Source of the DNA: Podarcis muralis
Taxonomy: Eukaryota
Assembly: GCF_964188315.1 (NCBI RefSeq)
Contig: NC_135657.1
Coordinates: forward strand, 310,001-374,000
Length of the DNA: 64,000 nucleotides
Direction: 5' to 3'
The notes under the pieces: model-generated
What the model was told of the DNA's origin: nothing
Database searches by the model: none
What the model saw: only the letters and a program-made list of their open reading frames with translations
Made by a program: the position numbers and the translations under genes
In this document: in pieces, positions 240 through 39,800 of the stretch
Layout: every line of letters begins with the position of its first letter
Position numbering within the stretch: position 1 is the first letter of the stretch

Positions 240-2050
240 GGGTCAATGTGGGCGGTCGGTGCCCCCTGGGACTGGTATGGCAGGAGGGAGACAAGCGGTA
301 GGGGGCGCCAGAGCCAAAGAGACTCCGCAGAACCAACTCAAACTAGTTTTGCCCTTCTCCGCTGAGTTCTCCGAGGGGGAAGGCAGACGCGGGCCGGCGG
401 GCTGGAGACTCAGCTCAGCGGCCCAAAGGACCTCCCGGGTTACAAGCCCCGCTCTTCCCCGCGGAGCCAGCCGCGCAGCAGCCGGCCGTCGGCGCCTGTC
501 GAACCGGAGCCCCGATCGGTCCCGAGCATCGTGCCTCCTGGACGGGCCCGCCCGCCCGACACTTTTCTTTGTGTCCCCCAGAGCCTCTTGGGCCCGTCGT
601 CTGGGGAGGCTCTCGGGCAGCTGGAAGGAGCCCCGCCTGCCTGCCCCGCCCCTGCCGGTCGCCAAGCGACCGACAACACATCGAGGGGCCTCTCCTCCGC
701 CTCCTGGCTCTACTTTTTCGTGCGCCACGAAGGACCCTCCAGCGCAGCCAGCAAGTAGAACCCCTTCTTGCCCGGGGACTGCCCCTTTCCGACTCTCCTG
801 CGCCCGGGAGAGCCCTCCTCCACCCCCATTCCACCGGGAGCGTGGCCAAGAGCCGCTCACACTTTCGGTTCCTAACTTAGCAGAGGAACATTTTCCTCTG
901 CCCTTGAAGGGGGGGCGTTGGCAGCTTCCCGGCCCCTCTTGATTCCTCTGAACGGCCAATGCTCCCCGCTTCAACTGCTCAACAGCGGGGGGCTCTGCGC
1001 ACGGAGGGCCCTGGGTTAGTCGGGCTCCGCGGGGCAGCCGCTCCGCTCTTGGACGACTTCCAGCGCCCTTCTTTTCCTTCCTCCTCCAGGGCTCAGGATG
1101 CCTCGCAAGCGCCGGGGGAAGACGCTGCCGCAGGCGCAGCCAGCTGGGACAGGACGCGCAGCCCCCGGGAGCGACGCCGAGGACTCCGGGGGTAGCCCGC
1201 CGCAGGAAGGCGCCTCGCCGCTGCAAGGGGAGCTGGAGCGCGTCTGCTGGGAGCTGGAGCGGCTGCGCGGGCGGCGGGCGCAGCTGCGGGCGCAGCACGA
1301 GCTCCTGGAGCGGGAGGCGCAGGGGCTGCGCGCCGAGAGCCGGGAGTTCCTGGACTACGTGGCCAAGCGGGCGCAGCGGCGGGAGGGGGCGGCCGTGTTG
1401 CTGGGCGACGAGAGCCGGCAGCTGCTGGCGCACATCCAGCACGAGCGCCGGGAGCTCCTGGCCCGCTCCGCGGAGCAGGAGGCAGTGCTGCGCGCGGAGC
1501 TGCTCCGCCAGGAGGCCGAGCTGGCGCGGCTAAGCGCCGAGCTGGAGGAGCTGCGCGGGGTGCGCGCGCTGCAGCAGGAGCAGGCCGGCCGAGTGCGGGA
1601 GCTGCAGCGCGCGCAGGCGGCGGCCCGCAAGGAGCACGTGCAGCGGCGGCAGGAGGCGGCGGCGCGCTTCGCGCAAGCCAAGGCGGCGCAGGAACGCGAG
1701 GCACGGGAGCGGGCGGCGCGCGTGGCCGGAGAAGCGCACCAGGTGGCCGCGCGGTGCCTGCTGGAGCACAGGCGGGAGGCGCAGCGGCAGAACCGGGAGC
1801 TGAGGCAGGAGCTGGCGCGGCTGGTGGCGAGGGCGCGGGCGCTGCAGGCGCACAAGGACCGGCTGGAGGATCGCGTGCAGCGCTTGCGGCGGCAGCAGGA
1901 CTCGCTGCGGGATTTGGCCCTCCTGCGCCGCGGCGGCCCCGAAGGAAGAGAGCGACCGGCAGCGGGGACGCGCGGAGACGCAGGAGGGCGGGCGCCCCTT
2001 CTCCGCAGCGCAGGGCAGACGAGCTGCCTCCAGCCACGCAACTGCTGAGA
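240..2050. promoter_or_regulatory. CpG island over promoter and body of the CCDC121/166-like gene
   Basis: Very high GC and CpG density relative to the flanks. Confidence 0.7.
1098..2048 (+). CDS. Coiled-coil DUF4515-family protein (CCDC121/CCDC166-like), single coding exon, 316 aa
   Basis: ATG-initiated ORF with long heptad runs; AESREFLDYVAKRAQRRE, LQQEQAGRVRELQ and NRELRQELARL align by eye with human CCDC166 and CCDC121; synteny favours CCDC121; AATAAA at 2557-2562. Confidence 0.85.
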   Translation: MPRKRRGKTLPQAQPAGTGRAAPGSDAEDSGGSPPQEGASPLQGELERVCWELERLRGRRAQLRAQHELLEREAQGLRAESREFLDYVAKRAQRREGAAVLLGDESRQLLAHIQHERRELLARSAEQEAVLRAELLRQEAELARLSAELEELRGVRALQQEQAGRVRELQRAQAAARKEHVQRRQEAAARFAQAKAAQEREARERAARVAGEAHQVAARCLLEHRREAQRQNRELRQELARLVARARALQAHKDRLEDRVQRLRRQQDSLRDLALLRRGGPEGRERPAAGTRGDAGGRAPLLRSAGQTSCLQPRNC

Positions 2051-4405: not shown

Positions 4406-6875
4406 ACTGAAAAGACTCAACTCAAGAACTACCGCCCAATATCACTACTTAATGTGGATTATAAAATCTTTGCAGACATTTTGGCAAAAAGATTTAAGAG
4501 AGTGTTGATGGAGATGATTCATAAGGACCAAGCAGGCTTTCTCCCAAAAAGGCATTTATCAGACAATGTAAGAAATATAATAGACATTTTGGAATTGCTA
4601 GAGGTGAATATAAACACCAAAGCAGTGTTGATTTTTGTGGACGCGGAGAAAGCATTTGACAATATTTCTTGGAGCTTTATGAAAAAGAATCTTCATGGGA
4701 TGGGGGTAGGCCAAGGATTTGAGAATGGTATGGGTGCGATATACTCTGAACAAAAAGCGAAGCTGATTGTAAATAATGTGATAACTGATGAACTTAAGAT
4801 AGAAAAAGGAACACGACAGGGGTGCCCAATTTCCCCATTGCTCTTTATTTCGGTTCTGGAGGTGTTGCTAAATATGATTAGAAATGACCAGCAGGTTGAA
4901 GGTGTACAGGTCGGAGATAAACAGTACAAGTTAAGAGCTTTTGCAGATGACTTAGTATTGACCTTACAGGAGCCAAACTCTAGTGCGAAAAGGGTGTTGG
5001 AGATAATTCAACAATTTGGCCAGGTAGCTGGATTCAAACTGAACAAACAAAAAACTAAAGTCATAGAAAAAAATTTAACAGTTAAGGAGAAGGAGGAATT
5101 TCAAGAAGAGACAGGTTTGACAGTGGTTAAGAAGGTGAAATACCTAGGGGTTCACTTGACATCCAAAAATTTGAACTTGTATAAGGACAATTATGAAAAA
5201 TGCTGGTCAGAAATTAAAAAAGACTTAGAAATATGGTCAAATTTGAAATTATCAATGTTAGGCCGAATTGCAGTTATCAAGATGAATGTATTGCCTAAAA
5301 TGTTATTTTTATTTCAAACTTTGCAAATCCTCGACAAGATGGATTGTTTTAAGAGGTGGCAGAAAGACATATCGAAATTTGTCTGGCAGGGCAAAAAGCC
5401 CAGAATTAAATTTAAAATCCTGACAGATGCTAAAGAAAGAGGGGGATTTGCCCTGCCGGACCTAAAACTGTATTATGAAGCAGCAGCGTTCTGCTGGCTG
5501 AAAGACTGGATGCTCCTCGAGAATACAGACATTTTGGACTTGGAGGGTTTCAATAATGCATTTGGTTGGCATGCATATCTATGGTATGACAAAATTAAGC
5601 TGCATAGGGCCTTTAAGAATCATATTGTCAGAAAAGCACTGTACAATGTTTGGTTAAGATATAAAGATTTGTTAGAAAATAAAACCCCTAGATGGTTGTC
5701 ACCCTTGGAGGCCAAGGCACTCAAAAAGCCCAATATGGAGGCCAAATGGCCAAAGTATTGGGAAATTTTGGAACAAGATGGAGACAAATTGAAATTACAG
5801 AGTCATGAGAAAATGAAACTTAAAGTACGTGATTGGCTCCATTATTATCAAATAATGGAGGTTTATAAACAAGATAGGAAAGTTGGCTTCCAGGTGGAGA
5901 AATCAAAATTAGAAACTGAATTGTTAGAACCCAATACTAAGAACTTGTCAAGAATGTACAATTTGCTGCTGAAATGGAATACGCAAGATGAAACAGTTAA
6001 ATCGGCTATGATTAAGTGGGCACAGGACATCGGTCATAACATAATGTTTGCTGACTGGGAATGGTTGTGGAATACAGGTATAAAATTTACGGCCTGTAAT
6101 GCTTTAAAGGAAAATATTATGAAAATGATCTATAGGTGGTATATGACCCCAGTCAAGCTAGCAAAAATTTATCATTTGCCTGACAATAAGTGTTGGAAAT
6201 GTAAAGAAACTGAAGGTACCTTCTACCACCTTTGGTGGACGTGCCCGAAGATTAAGGCTTTCTGGGATATGATATATAATGAAATGAAAAAGGTACTTAA
6301 ATGTACTTTTCCTAAAAAATCAGAGGCCTTTCTTTTGGGCATTGTCGGCCAATTGGTGTTAAAGAAAGATAGAATTTTCTTTATGTATGCTACGACAGCA
6401 GCAAGAATACTCATCGCAAAGTACTGGAAGACACAAGATCTACCCACCCTGGAAGAGTGGCAAATGAAAGTGATGGACTATATGACACTGGCTGAGATGA
6501 CCGGCAGAATCCGCGATCAGGGGAAGGAGACAGCGGAAGAAGAGTGGAAGAAATTTAAAATTTATCTTAAGGACTATTATAAACTTGATGAATGCTAGAA
6601 TGTTGAGGTTATGAGAAAGAAAGGGTGACAGTGATATAAGATTAGACTGAAGGAAAGATTAAAAGGACAGAGACTTGACAGAAATATTTAGAAGTTGCTA
6701 AAAAACTTTGGACATTGGGATGCAGAAAGGGGAGGTATGGGGGAGTCTGTGAAATAAGGTTTAGGAAAAAAAGGTTATGAAATTATACACGTTTGTATGT
6801 CTTTTTATATGTTTGTTTTGTTTTAAAAAATACTGTAAAACCAATAAAAAAAATTTATAAAAAAAAAAAAAAAAA
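4406..6875 (+). mobile_element. 5'-truncated L1 LINE, young insertion
   Basis: 17-bp TSD AGTGATGTGAGCAGACG at 4389-4405 and 6876-6892; AATAAA at 6843-6848 then poly(A); ORF2 open from the truncation point. Confidence 0.95.
4454..6598 (+). CDS. L1 ORF2 fragment (RT domain plus C-terminal CCHC finger); frame open back to 4406, endonuclease absent
   Basis: NYRPISLLNVDYKI, DAEKAFD, GTRQGCPISP, FADD, KYLG and CWKC...HLWWTC motifs; no internal stop. Confidence 0.9.
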   Translation: MDYKIFADILAKRFKRVLMEMIHKDQAGFLPKRHLSDNVRNIIDILELLEVNINTKAVLIFVDAEKAFDNISWSFMKKNLHGMGVGQGFENGMGAIYSEQKAKLIVNNVITDELKIEKGTRQGCPISPLLFISVLEVLLNMIRNDQQVEGVQVGDKQYKLRAFADDLVLTLQEPNSSAKRVLEIIQQFGQVAGFKLNKQKTKVIEKNLTVKEKEEFQEETGLTVVKKVKYLGVHLTSKNLNLYKDNYEKCWSEIKKDLEIWSNLKLSMLGRIAVIKMNVLPKMLFLFQTLQILDKMDCFKRWQKDISKFVWQGKKPRIKFKILTDAKERGGFALPDLKLYYEAAAFCWLKDWMLLENTDILDLEGFNNAFGWHAYLWYDKIKLHRAFKNHIVRKALYNVWLRYKDLLENKTPRWLSPLEAKALKKPNMEAKWPKYWEILEQDGDKLKLQSHEKMKLKVRDWLHYYQIMEVYKQDRKVGFQVEKSKLETELLEPNTKNLSRMYNLLLKWNTQDETVKSAMIKWAQDIGHNIMFADWEWLWNTGIKFTACNALKENIMKMIYRWYMTPVKLAKIYHLPDNKCWKCKETEGTFYHLWWTCPKIKAFWDMIYNEMKKVLKCTFPKKSEAFLLGIVGQLVLKKDRIFFMYATTAARILIAKYWKTQDLPTLEEWQMKVMDYMTLAEMTGRIRDQGKETAEEEWKKFKIYLKDYYKLDEC

Positions 6876-7093: not shown

Positions 7094-7496
7094 GTATATT
7101 CCTAGGCTCTGCTCAGAGCTCAGACTCCGTTTTAGAAACTAACTTTGTATTTTGTAACAAAGGTTTTTTTACCAGCATATTACTTTGATATATTTGTTGC
7201 CTGCATTCAAATGTCAGTAAACCTTTTGTTTATCTTACTAAAACGTGTGGTTCATTCTTAGCAAAGGGGATGGAGAGAGGAAAGGTCAGCAGACCACAAA
7301 TAAACAGGGATAAAGAGACATAATTGCCTAATTCCTAGATTACAGTAAGCTGCCAAAGTGCCTAAGTATTTTTACTCTGCTAAAGGGGCTTCACAGCATG
7401 TTTGCTCTCATATTGCTCCCCCACATGTGGGATAGGAGGTTTTGATTTTAATTTATGGATTTAATCCTCAATTAAACTCCCATCAGAAACAATATA

Positions 7497-7502
7497 TTTA
7501 TT
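7497..7502 (-). terminator. Candidate polyadenylation signal of the SPATA31-like gene
   Basis: AATAAA on the minus strand about 280 nt past the stop codon. Confidence 0.5.
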
Positions 7503-7781
7503 TCCTGCTCAAAGTATCTGCACTCCAGTCCAAAGCAGTGGCGCTGAGGACTCATCCAAGCCCAGTATGATGAGCATGCCTGTCTTGCACTGCCATCTTC
7601 TAGCCAGGCTGCTCACACAACAGCTTGAGCTCCTCATCGGACTTCTGTGTCTCAGGGGTGAGGATGGGGTTCTGGACCTCTCCTTGCAGCATCGAGGAAC
7701 AGCGAAGCTCCTTGCAGCCAGCTGAGCTCCTGCATCTTGGCAGCGTCACATGGGGCAGGTCCGGGGGGGGGGGGGCGGGCC

Positions 7782-9227
7782 TCACCTGATGGTGCTTTGC
7801 AGGAGGGCTGACCTGGCCACAGACTCCTTCACCCTCCTGGGCACCCCCCACCGCTGATGCAGAAGCTTCTCGCGCAGGTGGAATTCGAAGTACTGCTTTT
7901 TGTCAGTCGTAAGAAATCTTTCACATCCTGGATTTGCTCTGGGACTGTTTGTGGAAAGGTCTGTTGCTCGTGGTGAACTAGTTTGCCCACCCAACCCCTC
8001 AGGGGTGTGAGGCATAGCTTTCCCCAGGAGGCTCGTGGGACAGGGCTTCAACGCAGCCCCCTGGTGGTGATGGTGGCAGCAGCAGCAGAATGGGGAGTGA
8101 GCACAACAAGGCCGCTCAGTCAGAGGGGGGCTCTCTTGGCGGCACTCCGAGGCCTGCTCCCCCCCACCTGTGATGGAAACCAAGGCTGGGGTCAGATCCC
8201 AAAGGACCAGATCCAGCCGGGTGGGATCCCGTTTGCTGGTTGGTGGAGGCAGCTCTCTTTGGGTATCTGTGATGGCCCAGGCAGTCCGAGGGGAATCCCC
8301 GGCCGGCTGAAGTGGGACCCAGACCCCTTCCTCAGGATTCATCTTCCCTTGGGCGGCTGCGGCAAGAGGACGCTTCTCTGCAGGAGGACATCCTTGGGCA
8401 AGGGGTGCCCGGCCCCAGCTTGGCTGCTGCCTCTTGCAGCGCTGGAGCTCCACGCTAGCACACGCCTCCCCAGGCAGGCTCCGAGCCCCGTCCGGGTGGG
8501 CTGTGGCTGAGGGCAGATGGACCTGGAGGAGCTCCAAGGTGGCCAGGCTGTTCCAGGGGCCATCCCCACCCAGCTCCCGTTTCTCAGTCCCTGGAAGACC
8601 TTCCCACTGCTTCCCAGGCAGGCGTGCCAGTCCCGAGGCCAGTGGCAAAGGCTCCTGTGTCGCTTCTGGGCTCCACCAGCTTCTGCCGCCTTTGGCTGCC
8701 ATGGTCGTGGCAGAACAAGCCAGTGCTGCCGAAACACTGTGTTGCTTTGGAGAGCTGCTCCCTTTCGAAGAGGGCCTCTCTTGCTGTGGGGCTGCCTGGG
8801 CCAGAGGTGTCCCGGGAGGGGGCAGCGGCCAGCAGAGGGCTTTGCAGACCCTCTTGGGGAGGCCCCACTTGCGATGCACCGCTCTCTCCCTCAGGTGGTG
8901 CTCCAGGCACTGCCGCCTCTCCACCTTGAAAAGGGGCCTCTGGTGGTCGGTGGCAGCCTGCGGGGCTGTGCATGCCAGGAAGCCCGGCAGGGCCGGCACA
9001 GACCTCTCCAGCGAGCTGTGCACCAGGCCAGGCAAACCCCACAGCAGCTGCAGCCGCTTCCGTTGGAGGTGAGCTGTCAGCTGCTCTCGCACCTCCTGGC
9101 TGAGCAGCAGAGGGTCCAGCAATGGGGACTCCACCACTGTCCCGCTGCCCCGGCTTAGAGGGGGTGGGCAGAGGTTGGCCAGCTCGCTGGCTTGCCAGTC
9201 CTCGGGACCAGCCTCCAGTGACTGCAT
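7782..9227 (-). CDS. SPATA31/FAM205(FAM75)-family-like protein, 481 aa ORF
   Basis: Three copies of a L-x-x-H-L-x(7)-WG(L/V)P-x-x-V motif (LTAHLQRKRLQLLWGLPGLVHSSL, LEHHLRERAVHRKWGLPKRVCKAL, FEFHLREKLLHQRWGVPRRVKESV) separated by low-complexity linkers; next to ZNF512 as human SPATA31H1/C2orf16 is; in-frame stop upstream at 9255-9257. Confidence 0.65.
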   Translation of the reverse strand: MQSLEAGPEDWQASELANLCPPPLSRGSGTVVESPLLDPLLLSQEVREQLTAHLQRKRLQLLWGLPGLVHSSLERSVPALPGFLACTAPQAATDHQRPLFKVERRQCLEHHLRERAVHRKWGLPKRVCKALCWPLPPPGTPLAQAAPQQERPSSKGSSSPKQHSVSAALACSATTMAAKGGRSWWSPEATQEPLPLASGLARLPGKQWEGLPGTEKRELGGDGPWNSLATLELLQVHLPSATAHPDGARSLPGEACASVELQRCKRQQPSWGRAPLAQGCPPAEKRPLAAAAQGKMNPEEGVWVPLQPAGDSPRTAWAITDTQRELPPPTSKRDPTRLDLVLWDLTPALVSITGGGEQASECRQESPPLTERPCCAHSPFCCCCHHHHQGAALKPCPTSLLGKAMPHTPEGLGGQTSSPRATDLSTNSPRANPGCERFLTTDKKQYFEFHLREKLLHQRWGVPRRVKESVARSALLQSTIR

Positions 9228-9958
9228 CCTAGCCCCCTCGCCCTGGCCGCGCTCTCAGGGCCACAGACCCCTGGCCAGGCCGGGGTCAGTCAAGATCAGC
9301 CAGCTCCACACAGCTGCCTTCAAGACAGGCAACGGAGGAAAGCAAAGGGTCAACACTTCTCTTGGTTTGGCACAGAAGATGCCTCTATTGCAGGGAGTTG
9401 CTGGTTTGGCTCCAGAGGCACTGAAAGGAGGCCTGCCCTATGGACCCCTTTCTACCCCTCTGAAAGGATGGTGCTCAGAGAGCCAGGCCAGCAGCGGTTG
9501 TCCCCAACACACCAGCTACTCTCCCAGGCAATCCAGCTTGGACCAAGTGACACCACCACCTCCTCCTCCTGCAGTTCCGTTTATCTTGTTGCTACAGCAA
9601 CACATTGTGAGGTCAGCCTGGCACCCGGTGGGTGAAGCCACCTTCCCAGGACTGCCTCTCCTGACTGAGGGTCCTCAGGAACAGCAGGGCAAAAGGGCAC
9701 CTCTCGTGGGAGACTCCAGGGGGCCTTGATGCGCCGGAAAACACGGGAGGGGCACCCACAGTTTTTTGAAAACTCAACACTCAGAAATGGGTACAGAAGA
9801 AAATCCATCCATCTTATCTACAAATCTATCTATAAGATGTGACATACAATCTGGAATTCATGTATTGTTACACCTGGGTGTAATACTACCCAGGAAAACC
9901 AGGAAACTTCATACAATTCAATATGCTGTTCTGATTTATGTTATTAAACAAATCCAGA

Positions 9959-10793
9959 TGTCAGGGGCTCAGGGACTGAGCCACAGGAGAAGGAGGAGAT
10001 GGAGAGCGAAGGGGTTAGGGTTATCCAGAGGATTATTGTCAGAGACTGCCTCCCGGTCCCAGCTCACAGAGAACCAACGCTAGCCAGTAGAACTGTACAA
10101 AAGTCTTTATTGAAGTTTAGTTTCCATTTTCAAGCCCTAGCGTGCGTCTCTACGTCTAGACCCTAGACCAGCGAAGCCTCGTCTGAGTCTCCGCCCCCTG
10201 TACACCAGTTTAAGACTCTAGCCTTACTCCACCTTCTTCGTTTCTCCTTCCGCCTCTGGGTCCTACTACCCCCCGGGGTGCCTTCCTTCCTGGACGCCTC
10301 GGAGGCGGACCCCTCGGACTCTTTCCCCTCTCTTCGGCGGGCTTTGGGACCTGGCTCCCTATCCGGGCTGCTCATTGCGCCACCCTCTTGCACATTTGAA
10401 CTTGGCGCGCGCGCGCTGCCTCTGACCTTCCTTTTGACCGTTTCCTCGCTCTCTGATGCAGGCGTGGCTAACCCTGACTCATGTCCTTCCGCTGACGGAA
10501 AGCTGCCTGCTGCCGATGCTTGGGACTCCTCCCCCCTTCTGCTCTCCGGTGGGGAAGCTGGTCCCGATTTCCAGCTGCTGCTCTCTGAGTCCCCTCTGGC
10601 CCCTCCTTCCTGAGGTGTTCCCTCTGGCAACCCCCTAGCTCTGACCACGGGAGCCCCTTTCTGTGAATCCTCTGATTCGCTGGAGAGACTTAGAGACCTC
10701 GGACGGCTATCATCGCTGACCTCTCCCTCGGATTCCTCTCCCTCGGTCTCTAATTCCTCCCTTTCCTGTCCCTCTGCTCCTGAACCCCTGACA
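9959..10793 (-). mobile_element. Solo LTR (Ty3/Gypsy-like), 835 bp
   Basis: TG...CA ends with 14/15 terminal inverted match TGTCAGGGG(C/T)TCAGG; minus-strand AATAAA at 10106-10111 and TATA-like CTTAAA near 10215; no TSD found. Confidence 0.7.
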
Positions 10794-10806
10794 ATTATAT
10801 AAAACT

Positions 10807-10812
10807 TTTATT
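10807..10812 (-). terminator. Candidate ZNF512 polyadenylation signal
   Basis: AATAAA on minus at the end of an AT-rich stretch, 410 nt past the stop codon. Confidence 0.6.
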
Positions 10813-11216
10813 CACAATTTCAGTAATCTCATGTAGCTAATTTTGGTTTTTTATAACTAATTTAATGTAAAAATTACCTTGGAATGTGTGAATGTTTGGC
10901 TATCGTAATATTTTCAGCGACGCTCTGTCTGCAGTGTCCAGTTTACTCCCGGGGGTTGGGACACAGCTCACCCCCTGCCCGGCGGAGGCCAGGAAAGAAG
11001 TCCCGCCTCTGGTGGCTCCTCACCTGGGGAGGACCAGAGTCCTTGATGTGCCTCCTCAGAAGTAAACCCTGCTGAGCATTGGAGGGAGGAGTGGGGCTCC
11101 TTCCCCAGTCAGTCCCTTGAGCAGCCAAGGCCGCCTGAGGGGGGCTGGAGGGCAGGGTGCAAGGAGGGGTGTGGCCAGAGGAATCCCCCTCACCCTGAGA
11201 GACCAGAGGGGGGCCG

Positions 11217-14200
11217 CTACTCCCTCCCTCTCCTGTGGCTGAGCTTCAGAGGGGGAGGGCCATCCTCCTCCTCCTCCTCCTCCTCCTCCTCCTTCTCACA
11301 GCTCCCACTGGCCTTGAGGGGCTGCTGCTGCCCCTGCTCCCCCACTGCCTCCTGCCTGGGTGTCGCCTTCTTGGGGGAGGCAGCAGTCTGTGGCCTCTTC
11401 TTGCGGCTCCCGCTGGGCGGAGGCTTCCTGGGCGCTCTCTTCTGCTCCGCCTCCTCCGGCTGCTGCTGCTTCAGCAGCTTCTTGAAGCTCTTGGCGGTGT
11501 GTGTGCCAACGGCAAACCAGTCCTGGGGGTGGGGAGAGGCAGGAGGTGGGAGCGAGAGGAAGGGGGAGCGCCAGCACAAGCTGAGCCAGGCCAATGGCCA
11601 CAGACCCCGGTGAGGGCGCGGGCACAGCGGAAAGGTCTGTGGCATTGGATTGGGTCCATGCGCACTCCTGCAGCCCCCTTGCTCCTCACCTGCGCATGCA
11701 CAGTGTTGATGTGGTACTTGACTCCGCTCTCAGACACAAACTCCTTCTCACACAGCAGGCACCGGTATCTCCCAGCCACAAACTCCCCCTGCAGTGAGAC
11801 GGAAATGTGGCCTAGAATCTCTGGCAGCAAGAACTTGAGGAAGACAGCGGGGAGGGGGAGGAGGAGGGGGAAAGGGGAAGGAAGAGCCCCCCCCCCCCGA
11901 TTTTAAGCGCAAGTGTCTCGTCCCTGTGAAGGGAGGGATCTGCCAGTTGGGGCGCAGAGACGGTGATGGTGAATCCATGTCTGCCTCCAGGGGTGGTTTG
12001 GCAATGGCAGGCAGCAGCAGAATCCCCCCAAGCACACACATCCTGGAGCCCTAAGGAGAGGCTGGCACATACCAAGGTGCAGCTGCCCAGGTGGGACTTG
12101 AGGCCCGAGATGCTGCTGTAGACACACTCACAGCCCTGTGGTGGAAGGCGAGAGTCAGGAAAGGGCGGTCAGTGGCCCTCCCCACCCAGGAACGCCCCAG
12201 AGATGCAGGAGGGGAAATCCAGAGGCTCCTGGCAGCAACAGCTCTTAGTCTCCTCTCAGATACTTGGGGGCTCTCCCCACTCTGCACCTCTGTGATGCAA
12301 AAGGGCAGAGGGAGGGGCCTCCAGATTATTCCATGGGAAGCTGAACACCAAGGAAGAGCCCCCCAAAGCCTCCGCTGCAAGTGTTTGGGGCAAGGAGAAA
12401 GGAGCTCTGCTGCCCTTGTCCAGTCAGGAGAGTTGGTGGCATCCCCCAAGCTTTGCCCAGCCGTCCCGTTACCTGGTTTGGGCAGCGGACCCGTCGGCAC
12501 GCCTTGATCTCTGCCCTCCACATGCTCAGAACCTCCTGGCTGACAGCAGGCAGTCCTGGGCGGGTGTATTTCAGCTGAGGAAGAGAAGAGAGCAGAGCCA
12601 GAAGGCAGAGTGAGGAGCAGGGGCTGCTGCCTTCAGCTACTCCCACAGCAGCGCCCCCCCCCCCGTGCCCTAGCCGACTGGGGCACCCAGCTAACCAGGG
12701 GCAAAGGACCCTGACTCCTGAGCCCCAGGGACACCCCCTTCCTTGAGAGCCCAGCCAGCCTCTTCTGCTTCTCGGGTTCCTGGCCCCTGGGGGAAGTGCA
12801 AGCATTTGCACCTGTACTTTGACAAGACTTCAACTCCATTCCAGTGTTAGACAAAACGTCAAGCCTTAAAATAGCTGTTACTACAAAATCTCAGCAAAAT
12901 CCCGTAGTAACAAGCCAAGCTACTGCTAAGCGCCTTGCTCTGCTTTCCTTTGGACCCCATCAGCGAGGCTGAGAGGGGGGGGGGGTCTTGTTGTCTGGGC
13001 AGCCCAGGACCTCCAGGCTTGAACCGAGGAGCTCACTTCACTGCTGCTAATGCAGTAGTTTGACTTCACCCCTGGAAGTGCACTCCATTGTCTCTCGAGA
13101 TGGATAGATGACAACAAGAGTAACCAAAAAAATCAACCTGACCAAGAGAGCAGGCTGGGTAGGCCTCCTGAGGCGGGGGCTTCTACAACGTGGGGCCCCC
13201 CATTGCAAAAGACCCTGCTCCTCGGGAGAAAGCGCTCCCTTGCTGCATCCTGGCCTCTGAGAAACCTTGAGGTCAACCAGGACTCTTCTTGCTCCCAGGG
13301 CCAAATGGATTCTGAGGAAACGGCCGCACCTTCCGGTCCTCGGGAACCAGGTCCTGCCAGACCTTCCGCCTGGGCCACTCCTTGGCCAGGGCCTCCTTGG
13401 CCAGGGCCTCCTGCAGGTGGTGGGCGGCTGCCTGGGCAGACTTCCTCAGAGCACGGCGGCCTCCACTGCTGGGCTCTGCGCTTGCCACCTCCTTCTGGGG
13501 GGCCGGCTGGATGTCCTGGCCCAGCAAGGAGATCTGACAGGAAGGACACAGGGAGTGATGCTCAGAAAGGGCCACCAAAATGAGCATGGGGAGGAGGAAA
13601 GGCTGCAGCAATTGGGACTTTTCAGTTTAGAGAAAAGGCGAGGAAGAGGGACATGGAACGAGTTCGTAAAATTATGCAAAGCCTAGAGAAAGTGGATAGA
13701 GAAATGTTTTTTTCTCCCTCTCTCACAACACTGGAGTTTGTGGACATTCCATGAAGCCGAAGACTAAAAGGACAGTAAAACTAAAAGTGCAAACTGTGGA
13801 ACTCCCTCCCACAGGAGGCAGCAATGGCCACCAACGTGGGTGGCTTTAAAAGAGGAACGGACAGATTTACGGAGGGCTGGGCTTTTGATGGCTCACCTCC
13901 AGTCAAGAGGCAGCAATGCTTCTGCAGGCCAGTGGCCAGAAAGCGCAGCAGGAGAGGCCCAGGGCTCAGATCCTGCTGGCTGGTTTCCCACAGGCATCTG
14001 GCTGGCCCCTGTGAGAACAGGATGCTGGACTGGGTGGGCCATCGGCCTGATCTAGAGGTTCCTCTTGGTTCTTAGGTTCTGGCCAACGCCTGCCACTGCC
14101 AGAAAGGGGTAGCAAAGGCTCTCTGCAGGTGACAATGCCCGGCCCCGTAAGAGGAGGAGGGGCCTGCAGTGGCTTCTCTGGGCGTTGCCCCGCCCCCTCT

Positions 14201-17200
14201 TCCACCTGCCTGTCAGTCAGGAACAGGGGCTTCCTCTGCAGAGATGGGGAGAGGTCCCGCCCCTCTTTGCTCCTCACTGGCAACTCACCGGGCCATGCTC
14301 CATCTTCAGGTGGTAAGCGAGGCCCGCCTTGGAGCGGTAGGCTTTGCCGCAGTGCTGGCACTTCAGAGCCATCTGCTCCAGCTCGGCAGCCTCCTTCCCG
14401 CACTTCCGCGTGTGGTAGAGGAAGCCCAGGACGCTGGTAAAGCTGCCTGTGCAGCCCTGGGGGAGGAGAGGGGGGCAGAGAGGAGCACAGGCTCCCAGGA
14501 AGGAGGGAAGCCAACTCGGGGGGGGGGGGGGAGCTTCTGCGTCTGCCCTCCACCACCAGCTGGAAGGTGGCGAGTCAGCCCTGCATTCACCGAGAGGAGC
14601 CTGAGGCGGTCCGAGGCCCCTGCCCCAGCCTGGCCCAGGCCGCTCTGGTTCCCCGGAAGGCCAGAGGCTGCTCCATCTCACCTGCCTTGGGCACTTGAGC
14701 TTCCCCATCCGCTTCAGCACCCTCCGCAAGCGCTCTCTCTCGCCCAGATCGCAGGCCGCCTCCTCTGTCCCCACCGGCTGCGTAAACGGGAAGGGAAAGG
14801 CTGGCCAGGGACGCTCCAAACCGAGCCATTCAGATTCCCACTAAAGCCCAGGAAGAACTTTCTGGAGGCAAGAGCCGTTTGAGAGTGAAACGGGCTCCCT
14901 GGGAAGGTGGTGGACTCTCCTTCCTTGGAGATTTTCCATCAGAGGTGGCCCCCTGTCCGGAATGATGCAGTTGTGATTCCTGTGTTGCAGGGGTTGGACT
15001 AGATGGCCCTTGGGTATCTCTTCCAACTCTATGATTCTGTGCTTGCAGGTGACCCAAGGCCAAAGGCCCAGGAAGACCTGCTGGGGCTGAACTGTCGCCG
15101 TGTCAGGAGTCAAGGCAGGCTGGGTCCGGCCAGAGGCTCCCCAGAGGGCCCTGAACAAGGATGTACAGGCAGGCAGCAGGCTGGGCTTCCAGGGACTGAA
15201 GCATCTGCCTGAGGCATCTGGGGAGCCAGACACGTTCTTGTGGGCGCGCAGCATCTACTTACCAGGCTGTTGTGGTCTGCCATGATGTGGTACTTCATTC
15301 CTGCCAGAGACCGCAGCTGCTTCCCACAGTGGTGGCATGTGAGCATCTCCTAGGAAGACCACGAGGCATTGCACATGTCAGCAGTAGCCACCAGCATCTG
15401 GGCAGCACGGGCTGTGGGAACATCTCCCATTAGTCCTTGCTCCTGGAGTTTGGGGCCTGAAGTGTCCGTCCGTCCGTCCGTTCCCCCCCCCCATCCCGGA
15501 AACTGGCTTGCTCTGCTCTATTCTACAGTGAGTTTAATGTCTGCATTTTAAAAATTGTGGTTCTAAATTTTTAGCGATAATTTTACTGTTCCTTTTTTTG
15601 TAAACTGCTTTGAGATTTGTCTTACAAGCAAGCCGTATATAAATTTTACAAAATAAATAAGTAATTTGGGGGCTCCCCCCTCATGCAGACATGCAGAGCA
15701 GAAGCTGCCTCACTGAACCCTCAGTCTCAATGGCCAAGAACAACGACTCTTGTTTGGGCAGCACCATGCAAGCAATGCCATGAGAGACCCCAAAGGGCTG
15801 CGGGGAGAAGAGGGGCTGGCAGGGTCCCCTTGAACTCCAGGGTGAAATGGTTCACCTCTGAGCCAGAGCTGCTGGCAGGCTGGGGGCTAGTGTGGGGGGA
15901 GCTGCTGCTGGGGGTTTTCCAGGAGTGACTGGCTGGCTGATGTGGGAGACAGGGAGCAGGACGAAGCGGGCCTCCCTTGGCCTGACACTGTTACGCCCCA
16001 TGACTTGAGAGGGAGTTGCAGGGTTGGATCCCCAGGGATTGCCTAGGAAAAGGATAGGGTCCCATCCCCCGTCTGCTCACATGCTGGCAGTTGCTCATGT
16101 GCTTCTTCAGCCCTTCCACCGTCTTCCTCACAACAGCCCTGCAGGTGGGACAAGTGACGCGGCCTCTGCTCAGGATCTCCAGCTGCCAGTGCTCTTCCAG
16201 GCTGCCTGGCGGAGCAGAAGAAGGTGCTGACTCAGCCTCTTAAGGTTCCTGGCTGGTCCTGAGTGGGGCAGCCCTCTCACCTGGCCTGTGGGCATCCCAC
16301 TGGGGCGTCTTGGGCTGGCCCACCTGCTGCAGGGCTCTTCTTTCTATGCTTAGGGACACAGTCACGCTTACTAGCTTTCTGCACCCCCCCCCCAGTAATG
16401 CACCCCAACAACCTCTTCTGCCTGCTTTTTCAGCTATGCGCCATTCCTGGCTGCACACAGGGAGGGCAGACAAGAGGCCCCACCCCTTTGCCAGAGGTCC
16501 CGGGGTCCAGAGGACGATGGCCCTGGTTTCTTGGCTTCTGTCCTCACCAAGGAGCTGCGATGTCGGGGTCCTGTTTTACCTGCTGCATATACCGGTGTGT
16601 CTCTTTTTCTATGGCCACTTTTGGGCTTGAGATTAGGCTGTCGCCCCATCTGCTGCCATTTCCCTGGGACAAGGAAAAACAGCAGCCAGGACCATCTACC
16701 CTCCACCACAACCCAGAACACCCCACCAAATACCTTGGGGAGAGATGGAGGCCAAGGGAAGTGACCGCCCCAACATGGGCTCAAGCTCCAACACAGGAAG
16801 ATGAATAGTTCATGAGGGGCTCCCATCACTTGGGAGCAGCAAAGCTCAAAGTGTAGAGTGCAAAGGGACAGGGATGGGCAGCCCCCTCACATCAGGAGGA
16901 ACTGAGCTGAGTAGGTGGGCAGGGGGTCTCCAGCCCCCCTCCTTGCAGGAGAGCCAGGAGCGTGCAGGGGCCCAGAGAAAGGAACCAAAGTAGAATCCAC
17001 TCACCAGACTTCTGCTTCTTTTTGGGGAGCTCCTTGTCATCGCCTGCATCTTTGTTTTCCTGCTTGTGCTTTGCCTTGGAAAGGGAATCCCCAGCTAAGA
17101 GGAGAAGAAAGACTGAGACAAGTGTGGGGGTTTTTTTTGGGGGGGGGGATTTATTACAGTGGTACCTCAGTCTATGAACTTAATTCATTCCGGAAGTCCG

Positions 17201-33800: not shown

Positions 33801-36800
33801 CCCTGATGATGCAGCTGCCCAGGGACAGGTCTTGAGCAGCCCCCCCCCCCCAGCATGGCTGGCTGCCCCTCTCCCCAGGAAGGGAGCTGCAGGTCTAAGA
33901 AGGGTCCTGGTTGGGTAGGGGTCTGCCTGCTCTCCCTTCCCCTGGCCCTCATATTCCTCCTCCTCTTCCTCCTCCTCTTAGACGCCCATGATGCTGTTCT
34001 TCGTTTCAACGGAGCCCCAACCACTGGCTATGAGCAGGACGTGGGCACCAAAACTACCATCCGCCTCGTGAATTCCCAGGTGGGCAATGAAGGGGGGGGC
34101 TGGGAGAGGACAGCAGGGTGTGGATATGGGTTTGGGCCAAATAAAGGGAAGAGCCAATTGGGGGCAGCCTCGTGGGGCTGCAGTGTGTGGGGTTATGAGC
34201 TTTGGGCTGCTCTGTAGCCACAATCCCTGCCCTCCAGCTCTAGGGTGTGCTGAAGCCCACTGCCATAAAGAGGCTTGAGGCACCTTCAAAACTAGCAAAT
34301 GTTATTAATTATGAGATGAACTTTTGTGAACTCAGGCCCGTGTCTTCAGGTGAGAGTTGAATGGCCGTGAGATGCAAAAATCACAGCCAGTGATCATCAG
34401 AGCTTCCATAAAAAGACACACCTTCAGCCGCTTACCAGCAGATTGGTGAATAATGCGCTCATCTCGGCAGTGAACACCTGCCCTGGGTCAGGGAACCGTT
34501 CGCAAGGAACAGTTGTTGACAGCACAGGATGCTGCTGGCACTGGTAACACAGTAGGATCAAGAGCTGTTGTCTCAATGTTACCCAAGAGTGATGGCGCTG
34601 AAGTTACTGCCTTCGCCAGCTCCAGTGTGAGTTTGTGCTCTGGCTGAGCGGCACCTGTGGACTGCTGGGGCTTTGGACGTGGCATCAAGGGGCCTTGCCC
34701 ACAGAAGTCACCCCCATGCTGCTCCTCTGCAGGTGGAAGGTGGGTGGGTGCGCACACACACTCGGGTGCAATATGAGCAGCAGTAGGTGCCAAGCAGCTC
34801 AGAGAAAAAAGGGATAATTTCTCTCAGGGGAGCAACAAGAGGGAAGGATGGCCTCTCTGAAAGTGCAGAGAAAGGTGGGGCTGCCCTCTGCCTGCCAGCC
34901 TGCCCTTCCCCGCTAGGCTTCAGGTGTTTATGGGCTCTGGGCAAGAAACCCACATGTCTAACAAAGCTGCACGTAAGGGCCAGCAACCCTGGGGGCCTCT
35001 CCCTGCCCTCCCCTCTCCGCCTCTTCTTGCATCTGAACAACTTTCTGGGATCCTGGAGTCAGGCCCGTTCTGACCCGATCCGCCCCCCTCTACCCCACAG
35101 CTGATGGCTTCTCCTGAGCAGCACTTTCTGGATGACCAACTCTATGCGCAGGGAGCCTTGGTTGCATGGGACCCAGCCCCTTTCCCAGGGGACCTGCAGG
35201 AGGTGAGACCCTCTCTCTGCCTTGTGCTTGGGGCAGGACAAGATCCGTGGGTGCCAGGGGAGGGCAGGGGCATCCTCTGTCAATTACATTCCCAGGACTT
35301 GATAATAATAATAATAATTTATTATTTGTACCCTGCCCATCTGGCTGGGTTTCCCCAGCCACTCTGGGCGGCTTCCATAGAAACCAAAAAACACTAAAAT
35401 ATCATACATTAAAAACTTCCCTGAACAGGGCTGCCTTCAGATGTCTTCTGAATGTCAGGTAGTTGTTTATCGCTTTGACATCTGATGGGAGGGCGTTCCA
35501 CAGGGCGGGCGCCACTACCGTGAAGGCCCTCTGCCTGGTTCCCTGTAGCTTTGCTTCTCGCACTGAGGGAACCGCCAGAAGGCCCTCGGCGCTGGACCTC
35601 AGCGTCCAGGCAGAACGATGGGGGTGGAGACGCTCCTTCAGGTATACTGGACCGAGGCCGTTTAGGGCTTTAAAGGTCAGCACCAACACTTTGAATTGTG
35701 CTCGGAAACATACTGGGAGCCAATGTAGGTCTTTCAAGACTGGTGTTATGTGGTCTCGGTGGCCGCCCCCAGTCACTAGTCTAGCTGCCGCATTCTGGAT
35801 TAGCTGTAGTTTCTGAGTCACCTTCAAAGGTAGCCCCACATAGAGCGCATTGCAGTAGTCCAAGCGGGAGATAACTAGAGCATGCACCACTCTGGCGAGA
35901 CAGTCCGCGGGCAGGTAGGGTCTCAGCCTGAGTACCAGGTGGAGTTGGTAGACAGCTGCCCTGGATACAGAATTGACCTGCACCTCCATGGACAGCTGTG
36001 AGTCCAAAATGACTCCCAGGCTACGCACCTGGTCCTTCAGGGGCACAGTTACCCTATTCAGGACCAGGGAGTCCTCCACACCAGCCCGCCCCCTGTCCCC
36101 CAAAAACAGTACTTCTGTCTTGTCAGGATTCAACTTCAATCCATTAGCCGCCATCCATCCTCCAACCGCCTCCAGGCACTCACACAGGACCTTCACCGCC
36201 TTCACTGGTTCTGATTTGAAAGAGAGGTAGAGCTGGGTATCATCTGCATACTGATGGACACCCAGTCCAAACCCCTTGATGATCTCTCCCAGCGGCTTCA
36301 TATAGATGTTAAAAAGCATGGGGGAGAGGACGGAACCCTGAGGCACCCCACAAGTGAGAGCCCAAGGGTCTGAACACTCACCCCCCACCACCACTTTCTG
36401 AACAAGGCCCAGGAGGAAGGAGCAAAACCACTGTATAACAGTGCCCCCAGCTCCCAACCCCTCTAGACGGTCCAGAAGGATGTTATGGTCGATTGTATCA
36501 AAGGCCGCTGAGAGATCCAGCAGAACTAGGAAACAGCTCTCACCTTTGTCCCTAGCCCGCCAGAGATCATCGACCAGCGCAACCAAGGCAGTTTCAGTCC
36601 CATGATGAGGCCTGAACCCCCATTGGAAGGGATCCAAATGGTCCGCATCCTCCAGGTGTGCCTGGAGTTGTTCAGCAACCACACGCTCAATCACCTTGCC
36701 CAAGAATGGAAGATTTGAGACTGGGCGATAGTTGGCCATACTGGCCGGGTCTAAAGATGGTTTTTTAAGAAGCGGTTTAATGACCGCCTCTTTCAGCGGA

Positions 36801-39800
36801 TCTGGGAATGTTCCCTCACAGAGGGAAGCATTCACCACCCCACGAAGCCCATCGCCCAGTCCTTCCCGGCTAGCTTTTATAAGCCAGGATGGGCAAGGAT
36901 CCAGGAGACAGGTGGTTGGTTTCACTCGTCCAAGCAGCCTGTCCACATCCTCGGAGGTAACAGATTGGAATTGATCCCACTCAACTTGACTAGACAGAAC
37001 TCTAGCACTCTCCCGCCCCGGCCCTGCTCCCACGGTGGAGTCTACTTCTTCCCGAATCTGAGCGATTTTATCTGCAAAAAACTTTGCAAAATCATTGCAG
37101 GAGAACATGTGGCCCGTACTGGGCCCCGATGTTGCAGGTGGTTCCGCTAAATTGTGAACCACCTGAAAAAGTCTCCTGCTGCTGTTTTCTGCAGATGCAA
37201 TAGAGGCGGTGAAGAAATTCTTCGCCGTCGCTATCGCCACTTGGTAGGCTCGACGTTGAGCTCTAACCTGTGTCCGGTCAGATTCGGAGTGAGTTTTCTG
37301 CCACCGACGCTCTAGCCGTCTCAGCGATTGTTTCATCATCCTCAGCTCTGAAGAAAACCACGGGGCTGTCCGGGCTCCATGCATTGGACAGGGCACTTCG
37401 GAGCCAGACAGTCGATAGCCCTGGTTAACTCCACATTCCAGCAGGCCACCAGGGAATCGGCTGAAAGGCCATCAACATGGGATAAAGCATCCCCTACCAC
37501 TCTCTGGAAACCATTTGGATCCATTAAGTGGCAGGGGCGGACCATCCGAATTGGTCCCACCTCCCTGCAGAGGGGAAGGGTTGCAGAGAAGTCCAGTTGC
37601 ACCAGGAAGTGATCTGACCATGGCACTTCTTTTGTTTCGCTTTTAGTTAATGTCAGATCACCAACATCCGTAGAGGTAAACACCAAGTCTAAGGCATGTC
37701 CGCGGCTATGGGTTGGGCCAAACTTATTCAGGGACAGCCCCATGGAGGCCATGCTTTCCACGAAGTCCCGAGCGGCCCCTTGTAAGGTCGTGTCGGCATG
37801 GATGTTAAAATCCCCTAGGACAACCAAACTAGGTGTGTCCAGGAGGACATCTGCCACGACCTGAAGCAGCTCGGGCAGGGAATCCTTGGTGCAGCGGGGA
37901 GGTCAGTACACCAAAGGAATCCTGTACTGCCCCTATTGCCCAACTTCCAGAACATGCACTCAGAAAACTGGGTCTTCCCAGTAGGACGCCTGATGCAAAC
38001 TAATGACTTCCTAAAAATCACTGCAACCCCCCCTCCCCGCCCACATGACCTGGGTTGCTGTGCAAAAGAGAAACCTGGTGGGCAAGCGGCAGCAAGGACA
38101 GGCCCATCTGCTTCCTCCAACCAGGTCTCTGTCACACATGCCAGGTCAAATCCTCCATCCACAATCAGGTCGTGGATGGCAGTGGTTTTATTCATCATTG
38201 ACCTGGCATTACACAGCAACACCTTCAGGTCATGTGGGTTTCCCCTGTTGATTCCAGTATCCATCCGGTCAAGGCCAGACCCGGAGGCAGGGATAGTCTT
38301 CAAACAACGACTAAACCTGCCTCCTCGGTAATGACATGGTCTGGTCTTAGCGTAACTCCGCCTCCTGCCCATGATCACGAGATCGGATGTCCCAGTGCTT
38401 CCCCCCCTGTGGAACTTGTCCCAGCCATCGTGTTGGCTGGGGCCCCACTCCCAGGCAGCCCTGATCCCGCCCCTTAAAAACAAAACACAAACTATACAGA
38501 ACCAATAAAACAACAAAAAACAAAAACAGAACAATTATACTAAAATTAATCCCCAACCAAATATCCATCCCACCCACCCACCCCCAACAAAGAAAAAAAG
38601 AAAAAAAAGAAATACAAATTTAAATTGCCACCGACTGCTTGAGGACATTTTAAAACACATTAACCACTTGGAACAGGGAAGCAATTGCAGAACACTTCCC
38701 AGCTTCCCCAAAAGTTTGTTCCAAATAAGGGCCTGGGCGCCGCCCCCTGGGCCAGTTGGAGCAGGCCCTGGAAGGGAGCAGGCCCTGCAGTCCTCACCCA
38801 GCCGATGGTCCGAGGCTTCCCTGCAGCAGGAGTCCCTTTATAGCTGGGAGAGAGGGCCAGGGCCACACCCCCTGGGCCAGTTGGAAGAGGCCCTGGAAGG
38901 GAGCAGGCCCTGCAATCCTCACCCAGCTACTCTGGCGCCTTCTGGCGGCTGTCAGGGGAACTCCCTGCAATTTCCCTCTGGCTTAAAGAATGAATTCCAC
39001 AGCTAGGAGGAAATCAACCTTTGCACCAGAGATGGTGGGGTGGGGTGGGGTGGGGTGAAGCTCTGCTCTGCTCCACACTCCCCTTTCTCCCTCTCCCGGC
39101 AGTGGTTCGAGGCCCCCGACTACCCCATCTTCAGACCCTTCCGTGCGATGCGCTCCCAGAGGCCCCAGCAGCTCTTCCACCTGCTGCACCCGCGAGTGCA
39201 GTGGCAGCTCTGGGGGCTGGTGCAGGAAGGGGCACCGGAGGCAGTACAGCGGAACCCCCCCTCCTCAGGGCTGCTTGGTAAGGAAGGCACTCCCCTCCCT
39301 TGTGTCTCCCAAGGGTGCTCCCTTCTGAGTGGCCAAGAGGCACCCTTCCTCTGCCTCCCTTTTTACTGAGAGCTCCTCTCAGCCCTGCTTTCCTTCCTCT
39401 CACTGGTTGAGGGTGCGGGCGGCTGATGTTACTCCAGGGCATGAGGTGCGAGACACTTTCCACATTCTCAGGGGGACTCATCAAGTGCCAACTTTCCAGC
39501 CCTGGTGAAAGAAGTTTCCTCCTGCCCCCCCCCCCCGCCGCCCTGCAGGTCCTTCTTTGCAGCGGCCCCACCTCCATCTCTCCCTCTTCCAGGGACAGTG
39601 CTGATGCTGTCGCTCTGTGACCTGGTCCATGTCTACGAGTTCCTGCCCTCACAGCGCCAGTCTTCACGGTGCCACTACTACCAGGACTTTGTGGATGAGG
39701 CCTGCACGCTGGGTGCCTACCACCCGCTGCTCTTCGAGAAGGACCTGGTTCGCCGCATGAACCAAGGCTCACCGGCTGACTTGGCCCGGCTGGGGCGGGT

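Follow-up and report, generated by a model that had tools for sequence, protein, structure and literature searches.

The Podarcis muralis window analysed here (the whole stretch of 64,000 nucleotides, contig NC_135657.1) holds a single-exon open reading frame (ORF) next to the zinc-finger gene ZNF512, and this raises the question of whether a SPATA31 gene sits at this locus in a lizard and how it would relate to the genes of other vertebrates. To our knowledge, hardly any SPATA31 genes have been described outside mammals. A first-pass annotation had described a 481-amino acid frame adjoining ZNF512 and had likened it to the SPATA31/FAM205 family. The frame is present exactly as claimed, from an ATG start to a stop codon in the program-made ORF list, and the neighbourhood was recognized correctly: the ORF adjoins the ZNF512 exons (11.2-16.2 kb), and CCDC121 lies on its other side (Table 1). 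The ZNF512 gene was identified by zinc-finger Pfam matches specific to it in the upstream exons, which were scanned piecewise, and by joints with CT..AC ends at 11521/11689, 11787/12072, and 12134/12472, spliced in the runs X1, X3, and X23. The gene order is thus CCDC121(+) - ORF(-) - ZNF512(-), with the short gene in tandem 3' of ZNF512, in a lizard region that is syntenic to human 2p23.3.

Table 1. Coordinates of the short SPATA31-family gene, its protein segments, and its neighbours (window positions)
Feature	Positions	Strand	Remarks
CCDC121 (DUF4515) coding ORF	1098-2048	+	Pfam DUF4515, E 5.3e-16; convergent with the short gene
3' UTR of the short gene	7482-7781	-	AATAAA at 7497-7502; RNA contig ends at 7482
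Single-exon CDS, short SPATA31-family gene	7782-9227	-	481 codons + TGA stop; RefSeq LOC114595054-like
C-block, aa 436-481	7785-7922	-	FAM75 profile positions 200-236
Motif 3, aa 450-463	7839-7880	-	in the C-block
Variable disordered linker, aa 136-435	7923-8822	-	contains a lacertid-specific Cys/His-rich patch
N-block, family core, aa 20-135	8823-9170	-	FAM75 profile positions 112-236; motifs 1 and 2
Motif 2, aa 111-124	8856-8897	-	in the N-block
Motif 1, aa 53-66	9030-9071	-	in the N-block
Transcribed leader	9228-10036	-	X1 contig; likely main transcription start ~9540-9640
Dispersed-repeat insertion	10037-10793	.	separates the short gene from the ZNF512 poly(A) site; a 5-bp ATTAT duplication on its flanks
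ZNF512 last exon	10794-11521	-	coding end ~11220, then 3' UTR; AATAAA at 10807-10812

The family assignment was borne out by a profile search, in which Pfam FAM75/SPATA31 (PF14650, curated gathering cut-off of 24 bits) matched the ORF protein at profile positions 112-256 with 50.1 bits (E 3.8e-13), and the N-terminal block by itself still reached 37.4 bits. Because the full score stands so far above the cut-off and intact orthologs exist in 13 sauropsid species, the match is far beyond chance. A language-model look-alike search (ESM Atlas) with the ORF protein returned FAM75 clusters again and nothing further; no match was obtained in an NCBIfam scan of the protein or in a PDB sequence search using the ortholog profile. 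The protein differs by 2 residues from the Podarcis muralis RefSeq entry "uncharacterized protein LOC114595054". The ORF is a real protein-coding gene, already annotated, and an ordinary member of the SPATA31/FAM75 family. It represents a new, short, anchor-less subfamily within that known family, which is a modest advance since both the annotation and the Pfam assignment existed already. We hold with good confidence that its identity as a single-exon SPATA31/FAM75 gene, its position 3' of ZNF512, and its expression are, taken together, correct.

The protein carries three WG[LV]P motifs (W63, W121, and W460, at nucleotides 9041, 8867, and 7850), each with a conserved histidine ahead of the tryptophan (H53..W63, H111..W121, and H450..W460). 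The three copies reported earlier therefore do exist, but the spacing given for them, H-x(7)-WG(L/V)P, fits none (0/3 for the literal pattern H-x(7)-WG in the ORF protein), the correct form being H-x9-WG[LV]P. Their placement in disordered linkers has to be revised as well, as the motifs sit in two conserved, helix-prone blocks that flank a single linker. AlphaFold2 predicts a helix-WGxP-helix arrangement at each of the three motifs, with helices at residues 44-62, 67-76, 102-117, and 125-130 of the N-block and 441-459 and 464-480 of the C-block, and disorder in the remainder, at low confidence throughout (mean pLDDT 36, about 30 in the linker, maximum of 56 in the blocks). In the group consensus of 123 proteins, a core pair LE.H...K..Q..WGLP ... 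LE.HL.K....H.WGLP is common to the family, and this pair is present in the ORF. Since the C-block maps to profile positions 200-236, motif 3 is a repeat of motif 2. Judging by these alignments, the protein has one canonical family core pair, the second element of which recurs once more at the C-terminus. The first-pass annotation had suggested a family reduced to a three-repeat module; the protein is rather a derived short version in a family of mostly giant multi-copy members, and it need not be the ancestral minimum. FAM75 profile positions 1-111 have no match in the short protein, a hydrophobic segment is likewise missing from it (Kyte-Doolittle 19-residue mean ≤1.09), and no upstream coding exon is spliced onto the ORF in the RNA contigs. 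The N-terminal part (FAM75 1-111/DUF4599) occurs in many members but is not universal in the family, and its absence marks the subfamily and is compatible with membership.

Intact orthologs were found in 13 squamate and turtle species (12 proteins of 393-568 amino acids and a gecko copy), so the frame is whole in the relatives, as a functional gene of the kind proposed in the first-pass annotation would demand. The 12 proteins are all alike in start, end, and both blocks. Between lizards and turtles, the N-block is 60-63% identical with zero gaps and the C-block 54-59%, and the linker is about 20% identical with >125 gap columns; within lacertids, the blocks are 97-100% and the linker 85-87% identical, and the linker of organism B contains in-frame indels. 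Among the sister-species differences listed (n = 20), 15 are nonsynonymous and 5 synonymous over 1079 and 364 sites, respectively, and the two rates are thus about equal, which suggests that most of the length is without visible constraint. The N-block also delimits the group, with scores of 100-217 bits inside the short clade versus ≤77 bits for all other proteins, and the clade is recovered with an aLRT of 100 in IQ-TREE (-fast) and an SH-like value of 0.998 in FastTree. So far, the short subfamily has been found only in squamates and turtles.

The family itself reaches much further. Profile matches revealed members in shark, sturgeon, gar, whitefish (a teleost), coelacanth, caecilian, and salamander, and the origin in the amniote ancestor that had been suggested is thereby contradicted; on these sequence matches, the SPATA31 family is at least gnathostome-wide and specific to neither mammals nor amniotes. 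The giant SPATA31F1-like proteins of squamates, turtles, salamander, coelacanth, and sturgeon belong to the same family and share the same core motif pair; however, each of them strings together 5-37 core copies over 2,000-5,100 amino acids, compared with one pair and one element in the short protein. They also sit elsewhere in the genome than the short gene, and the genome of P. muralis carries such a giant as well ('SPATA31F1', 4,173 aa). In the N-block, they resemble the short clade no more closely than other family members do. The classical mammalian proteins (mouse Spata31, SPATA31A-E, and SPATA31F1/FAM205A) resemble the lizard protein in the FAM75 core with paired LE-H-x3-K-x5-WGLP elements, in having one to three core copies, and in their fast-evolving flanks. 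In contrast to it, they measure 1,000-1,500 amino acids, and some family clusters include DUF4599 (PF15371), whereas the lizard protein covers only FAM75 positions 112-256, lacks a hydrophobic segment, and has its own conserved N-terminal lead-in, PPLSRGSG..VESPLLDP.

RNA assemblies of two Podarcis species contain an unspliced transcript of the gene. The runs X1 and X3 represent RNA, since the introns of ZNF512 are removed in them; in X1, a contig covers 7482-10036 without a splice and colinear with the genome, and in a second Podarcis species (X13) an RNA assembly likewise includes the short gene. Relative to the last exon of ZNF512, the depth of the short gene is 0.56 in X1, 0.06 in X3, and ~0.03 among the raw reads of X23, and owing to this variation of about 20-fold the level of the short gene is not a fixed fraction of that of ZNF512. 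In organism B, the contig depth steps up from 7.7 (9642-9916) to 26.5 (9095-9540), ~350 nt ahead of the ATG. The proximal leader of 377 nt (9228-9604) is free of ATG triplets, of which ~5 would be expected, and an A stands at -3 of the start codon. The mRNA is unspliced and ends at the AATAAA near 7482. We infer its transcription start, like its tissue, its partners, and the adaptor role discussed below: the start would probably lie 300-400 nt ahead of the ATG, and some transcripts would read through from ZNF512. A splice donor at the stop codon (CAG/GTGAGG) that could lead to a further exon was considered and rejected, as no run contains such a joint, the RNA contigs continue to the poly(A) site, and all orthologs share the last residue.

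Three other explanations of the locus were weighed. According to one of them, the ORF is no gene of its own and rides on an extended 3' UTR or on read-through isoforms of ZNF512, poorly or never translated, its separate annotation being an artefact. Leaving the repeat out of account, only ~0.8 kb separates the ATG from the ZNF512 poly(A) site. The X1 contig starts exactly at the repeat border by that site, so that the RNA could be partly or wholly ZNF512 read-through, and the copies of Pogona and Pelodiscus bear the RefSeq label 'zinc finger protein 512 isoform X1', which implies overlapping transcript models. However, the same start and stop frame and two blocks of 54-63% identity have been kept from lizards to turtles, which is inexplicable without translation, and the variable ratio to ZNF512, the depth step in organism B, and the ATG-free leader likewise speak against it. 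We consider a mere read-through frame very improbable; the short gene seems to be independently regulated, and RefSeq has misnamed the Pogona and Pelodiscus copies. Another explanation accepts the gene and makes it the sauropsid co-ortholog of the whole mammalian SPATA31A-F group, belonging neither to SPATA31H1 nor to the giants. Trees were built from the best N-block of each of 123 proteins (116 columns), with one module per giant protein, and the short clade came out as sister to a set of 34 representatives. All four of the named mammalian sequences (bat, bat, monkey, and hare) fall into this set, and the 26 named non-mammals all lie outside it; in both groups there are only one to three core copies. 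Yet this sister grouping is weak (aLRT 72, SH-like 0.80) for its 116 columns, both groups have long branches that may attract each other, and the giants entered the tree by a single module. Moreover, NCBI calls the giant squamate genes SPATA31F1/FAM205A, and some of them have DUF4599 as in mammals, which suggests the giants as the orthologs of the mammalian genes. On balance, co-orthology with the mammalian group is rather unlikely.

The remaining explanation is the one that the first-pass annotation had suggested, in which mammalian SPATA31H1 (C2orf16) has its sauropsid ortholog in this gene, kept at the ancestral ZNF512-linked locus, and the three-motif protein shows the family's original state in the amniote ancestor. 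Both genes are assigned to the SPATA31 family, both lie immediately beside ZNF512 on its strand, and both belong to an IFT172-GCKR-ZNF512-CCDC121 region. The human gene, however, lies 5' of ZNF512, in the GCKR-ZNF512 slot of the order GCKR - C2orf16 - ZNF512 - CCDC121 (PMC2570409, PMC3064107), whereas the lizard gene occupies the ZNF512-CCDC121 slot 3' of it, and no FAM75-like sequence was found 5' of ZNF512 across 45 kb of the window. A tandem duplication of ZNF512 with its neighbour, followed by reciprocal loss, could have swapped the flank while keeping the strand. The proteins differ too: SPATA31H1 is a giant, reported with 5 exons and with a variant at residue 4789, and the lizard protein has 481 residues from one exon. 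According to the HGNC, C2orf16 owes its place in the family solely to a deep-learning match by Pfam-N (PMC12807706), whereas the score of the lizard protein exceeds the Pfam HMM threshold. Among the nameable ones of the 127 profile matches no protein is named SPATA31H1, the named mammalian matches being SPATA31D1-like and SPATA31F1-like only, and a search with a gecko giant protein named no SPATA31H1/C2orf16 relative and returned SPATA31F1, FAM205A, and uncharacterized proteins only. These searches thus revealed no connection between the lizard protein and SPATA31H1 at the sequence level. In addition, the family predates the amniotes by far. Adjacency to ZNF512 alone does not establish orthology to SPATA31H1, and we regard this descent as quite improbable. 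We give a similarly slim chance to a combined scenario, in which the short gene and SPATA31H1 come from one ZNF512-linked ancestor through duplication of the ZNF512 unit and reciprocal loss, and the short clade is also the nearest sauropsid kin of SPATA31A-F. If it were true, the ZNF512 neighbourhood would have given rise to the SPATA31 genes of amniotes, which later exploded in primates.

We are aware of no species in which a function or a binding partner has been assigned to the FAM75 core. As a member of a short subfamily of its own, the lizard protein is the smallest natural carrier of the FAM75 core found here. It is soluble, has 481 residues and three copies, and leaves the rest free to vary, which makes it well suited to a search for the partner that the motif binds. 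Selection preserves the three motif elements, and the 300-residue spacer is almost free to evolve. The short protein might serve as an adaptor, soluble and multivalent, that would dock the same kind of partner as other SPATA31 proteins through its three conserved elements. Its action would be confined to a restricted tissue, with the male germ line as the likeliest one. Both the adaptor role and the germ-line site of action are tentative proposals by analogy with mammalian relatives: mouse Spata31 is expressed in the testis and binds beta-actin and syntaxin 1 in spermatids (PMC5338094), and FAM205A is reported to be acrosomal (PMC13423385).

The dispersed repeat next to the leader is, in the explanation that we favour, a young insertion. 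It is missing from one X1 RNA contig, which joins 10031 to 10794 with 5 letters common to both sides and thereby skips 762 bp, including one copy of the ATTAT duplication. Within the repeat, the RNA depth rises to hundreds to thousands, many contigs are 90-95% alike, and loose ends occur at both borders. An S/E-rich frame of 214 codons (10166-10807), considered as an upstream exon of the short gene, was rejected, since it lies inside the repeat, whose RNA depth is thousands-fold and whose flanks are foreign.

The 481-codon frame beside ZNF512 is a conserved, transcribed, single-exon gene; its product is a disordered protein that carries three basic helix-WGxP-helix elements, all of them conserved. 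In the ORF listing of the window, the ATG-to-TGA frame has exactly the coordinates proposed by the first-pass annotation (table), and all three expected WG[LV]P motifs are present, their tryptophans encoded at nt 9041, 8867, and 7850. The proposed H-x(7)-WG spacing fits none of the three motifs; the histidine is found nine residues ahead of the tryptophan (H53/W63, H111/W121, and H450/W460). Rather than residing in disordered linkers, as had been suggested, the motifs are located in two conserved blocks, the N-block (residues 20-135, motifs 1 and 2) and the C-block (residues 436-481, motif 3), with a linker of ~300 residues between them.

Features in and around the short SPATA31-family gene
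Feature	Position	Strand	Remark
CCDC121	1098-2048	+	DUF4515, E 5e-16
Open frame between CCDC121 and the short gene	4454-6598	+	714 aa; translation resembles LINE reverse transcriptase
AATAAA signal of the short gene	7497-7502	-	
Short gene	7782-9227	-	ATG to TGA, 481 codons
Cys/His-rich patch of the linker	8061-8092		residues 379-389; four Cys, then four His
CRE-like octamer	9608-9615	-	
Dispersed repeat between ZNF512 poly(A) site and short gene	10037-10793		5-bp ATTAT duplication at flanks
Open frame in the repeat	10166-10807	-	214 codons, Ser/Glu-rich
ZNF512 poly(A) signal	10807-10812	-	
ZNF512 coding end	about 11220	-	
ZNF512 exon, ZNF512_zf-C2H2	15113-15349	-	Pfam E 1.3e-14
ZNF512 exon, ZNF512_C2HC	15994-16239	-	Pfam E 1.4e-22
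Retroelement frame	35402-37396	-	664 aa; RVT_1, E 6e-37
Rhodopsin-type GPCR, 5' side of ZNF512	46815-47963		7tm_1, E 6e-38
Retroelement frame	59717-61423	-	568 aa; retroviral integrase core and SH3-like domain

The suspected membership in the SPATA31/FAM205 family was confirmed by a profile search: Pfam FAM75 (PF14650, SPATA31 domain), whose gathering score is 24, matches the protein at 50.1 bits (E 3.8e-13), and the alignment spans positions 112-256 of the 382 in the profile. Scanned by itself, the N-block aligns to positions 112-236 and the C-terminal motif to positions 200-236. The protein thus consists of one family core pair and an additional copy of the second element, and the three repeats of the supposed module are not equivalent. 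A word search retrieved a 481-aa RefSeq entry from Podarcis muralis, "uncharacterized protein LOC114595054," which differs at two residues (S360P and P379A); the source of the window is accordingly a wall lizard, either P. muralis or a very close relative. An annotation with a precomputed Pfam domain already exists for the gene, which RefSeq and UniProt list as an uncharacterized SPATA31-domain protein; it constitutes a new, short, anchor-less subfamily within a known family. Among natural carriers of the unexplained FAM75 core it is the smallest, which is its main value. At the two differing sites (window 8150 and 8093), run X13 from a sister Podarcis species (organism B) has the RefSeq state, and RNA runs of organism A have the window state; the window and the RefSeq protein may stem from different lineages or assemblies.

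AlphaFold2, supplied with the ortholog alignment, places each motif in a predicted helix-WGxP-helix arrangement (44-62/67-76, 102-117/125-130, and 441-459/464-480) and shows no structure outside these elements, with a mean pLDDT of 36 for the protein. No hydrophobic segment is found in its sequence. The three elements could serve as docking sites, and the protein would then be a soluble multivalent adaptor, as suggested for other SPATA31 proteins. PMC13423385 describes FAM205A as acrosomal.

Orthologs of 393-568 aa, which share start, end, and both blocks with the window protein, were identified in lacertids (Zootoca and Lacerta), other squamates (Pogona, Phrynocephalus, Sceloporus, the gecko Paroedura, and two squamate transcript assemblies), and four turtles (Lepidochelys, Chelonoidis, Chelydra, and Pelodiscus). 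Between lizard and turtle, identity to the window protein is 60-63% without gaps in the N-block (116 aa) and 54-59% in the C-block, versus about 20% with >125 gap columns in the linker; within lacertids, the corresponding values are 97-98%, 98-100%, and 85-87%. The reading frame is intact in the sister species despite indels of 3 nt and 2+13 nt, whose net effect is in-frame. Among the differences listed, 15 nonsynonymous versus 5 synonymous changes (over 1079 versus 364 sites) are almost all confined to the linker. Together, the block and linker identities and the concentration of substitutions in the linker indicate that selection keeps the motif blocks, while the spacer is left to drift or diversify. 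The Cys/His-rich patch of the linker varies among lacertids, and the sister species has C382R, C383R, and a 3-nt deletion there, which makes a conserved metal site unlikely.

The adjacency to ZNF512 holds, as ZNF512-specific Pfam matches occur in the neighboring exons. Discounting the dispersed repeat, the ATG of the short gene follows the ZNF512 poly(A) site by about 0.8 kb. In one contig of RNA run X1, position 10031 is followed directly by 10794, so that the repeat (762 bp, one ATTAT copy counted) is left out as if it were missing from one allele; together with the ATTAT duplication, this indicates a young, probably polymorphic insertion. RNA depth on the repeat reaches hundreds to thousands, with many copies 90-95% alike. 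Two of the orthologs, P0005 from Pogona vitticeps and P0011 from Pelodiscus sinensis, bear the RefSeq name "zinc finger protein 512 isoform X1." Both can be aligned over their full length with the short SPATA31-family protein, and neither has any ZNF512 sequence; the tight tandem layout probably led to transcript models overlapping ZNF512 and thereby to this misnomer.

Given this proximity, the RNA over the frame might be a constant by-product of ZNF512 transcription. Runs X1 and X3 are RNA since the last ZNF512 introns have been removed (joints 11521/11689, 11787/12072, and 12134/12472, the last only in X3 and X23; the CT..AC ends equal GT..AG on the minus strand), and X23 raw reads carry the same joints. 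A single X1 contig of 2,551 nt spans 10036 to 7482 unspliced. An apparent splice donor overlapping the stop codon of the short gene is unused in the RNA runs. The depths over the frame and the last ZNF512 exon are 27.6/48.9 in X1, 9/140 in X3, and about 0.5/20 in X23, and these run-to-run differences show that the short-gene RNA is not a constant by-product of ZNF512. Such run-dependent expression is consistent with a tissue-restricted role. In organism B, the frame is covered by a contig with a depth of 33.5, and depth rises from 7.7 (9642-9916) to 26.5 (9095-9540), which suggests a main transcription start about 320-420 nt ahead of the ATG. The start codon has an A at -3 and is preceded by 377 nt devoid of ATG, where about five would be expected. 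Just upstream of the putative start is the octamer TGACCTCA, one mismatch from the cAMP-response element, which is used by spermatid promoters. It would fit such a promoter, although a single 8-mer carries little weight.

A profile built from the orthologs gave only 127 matches among 1.84 billion representative proteins. Beyond squamates, turtles, and mammals, the named matches came from a shark (Heptranchias), sturgeons, a gar, whitefish (Coregonus), coelacanth, a caecilian, and Pleurodeles. This spread makes the SPATA31 family at least gnathostome-wide, and the proposed origin in the amniote ancestor is not supported. The non-mammalian members are mostly giants, with 5-37 core copies in 2,000-5,100 aa. 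Within the squamate and turtle clade of short proteins, the N-block scores 100-217 bits, versus 77 bits or less beyond it, and two trees support this clade (aLRT 100, SH-like 0.998). The protein libraries yielded no bird, crocodilian, mammalian, or amphibian members of the clade. The sister of the clade in both trees is a group of 34 representatives including all four named mammalian sequences (aLRT 72, SH-like 0.80), a weakly supported grouping that may be taken as a lead, not a result.

The short gene had also been proposed as the sauropsid ortholog of human SPATA31H1 (C2orf16) at the ancestral locus. The published human order is IFT172, FNDC4, GCKR, C2orf16, ZNF512, CCDC121, with GCKR at 27.596, C2orf16 at 27.655, ZNF512 at 27.669, and CCDC121 at 27.705 Mb (PMC2570409, PMC3064107), which places C2orf16 on the 5' side of ZNF512; the short gene of the lizard is on the 3' side. 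A six-frame HMM scan of the window detected no second FAM75-like sequence, and the long ORFs scanned in 19000-64000, 5' of ZNF512 where GCKR and FNDC4 are found in human, gave no Pfam match to either. The mammalian sequences among the named profile matches are SPATA31D1-like and SPATA31F1-like; SPATA31H1 is absent from them. Since the flank is opposite and the named matches lack SPATA31H1, orthology is unsupported by position and by sequence, and so is the ancestral locus. SPATA31H1 is a giant protein, given a variant reported at residue 4789, and HGNC based the renaming of C2orf16 solely on a deep-learning match by Pfam-N, one that had not been called by the Pfam HMM (PMC12807706).

For a SPATA31-family protein of Pelodiscus sinensis (P0093, 1,582 aa), the annotation reads "proline-rich protein 30 isoform X2." Human PRR30, too, lies in 2p23.3, and turtles may thus have a second family member in the same chromosomal region, a candidate counterpart of SPATA31H1.
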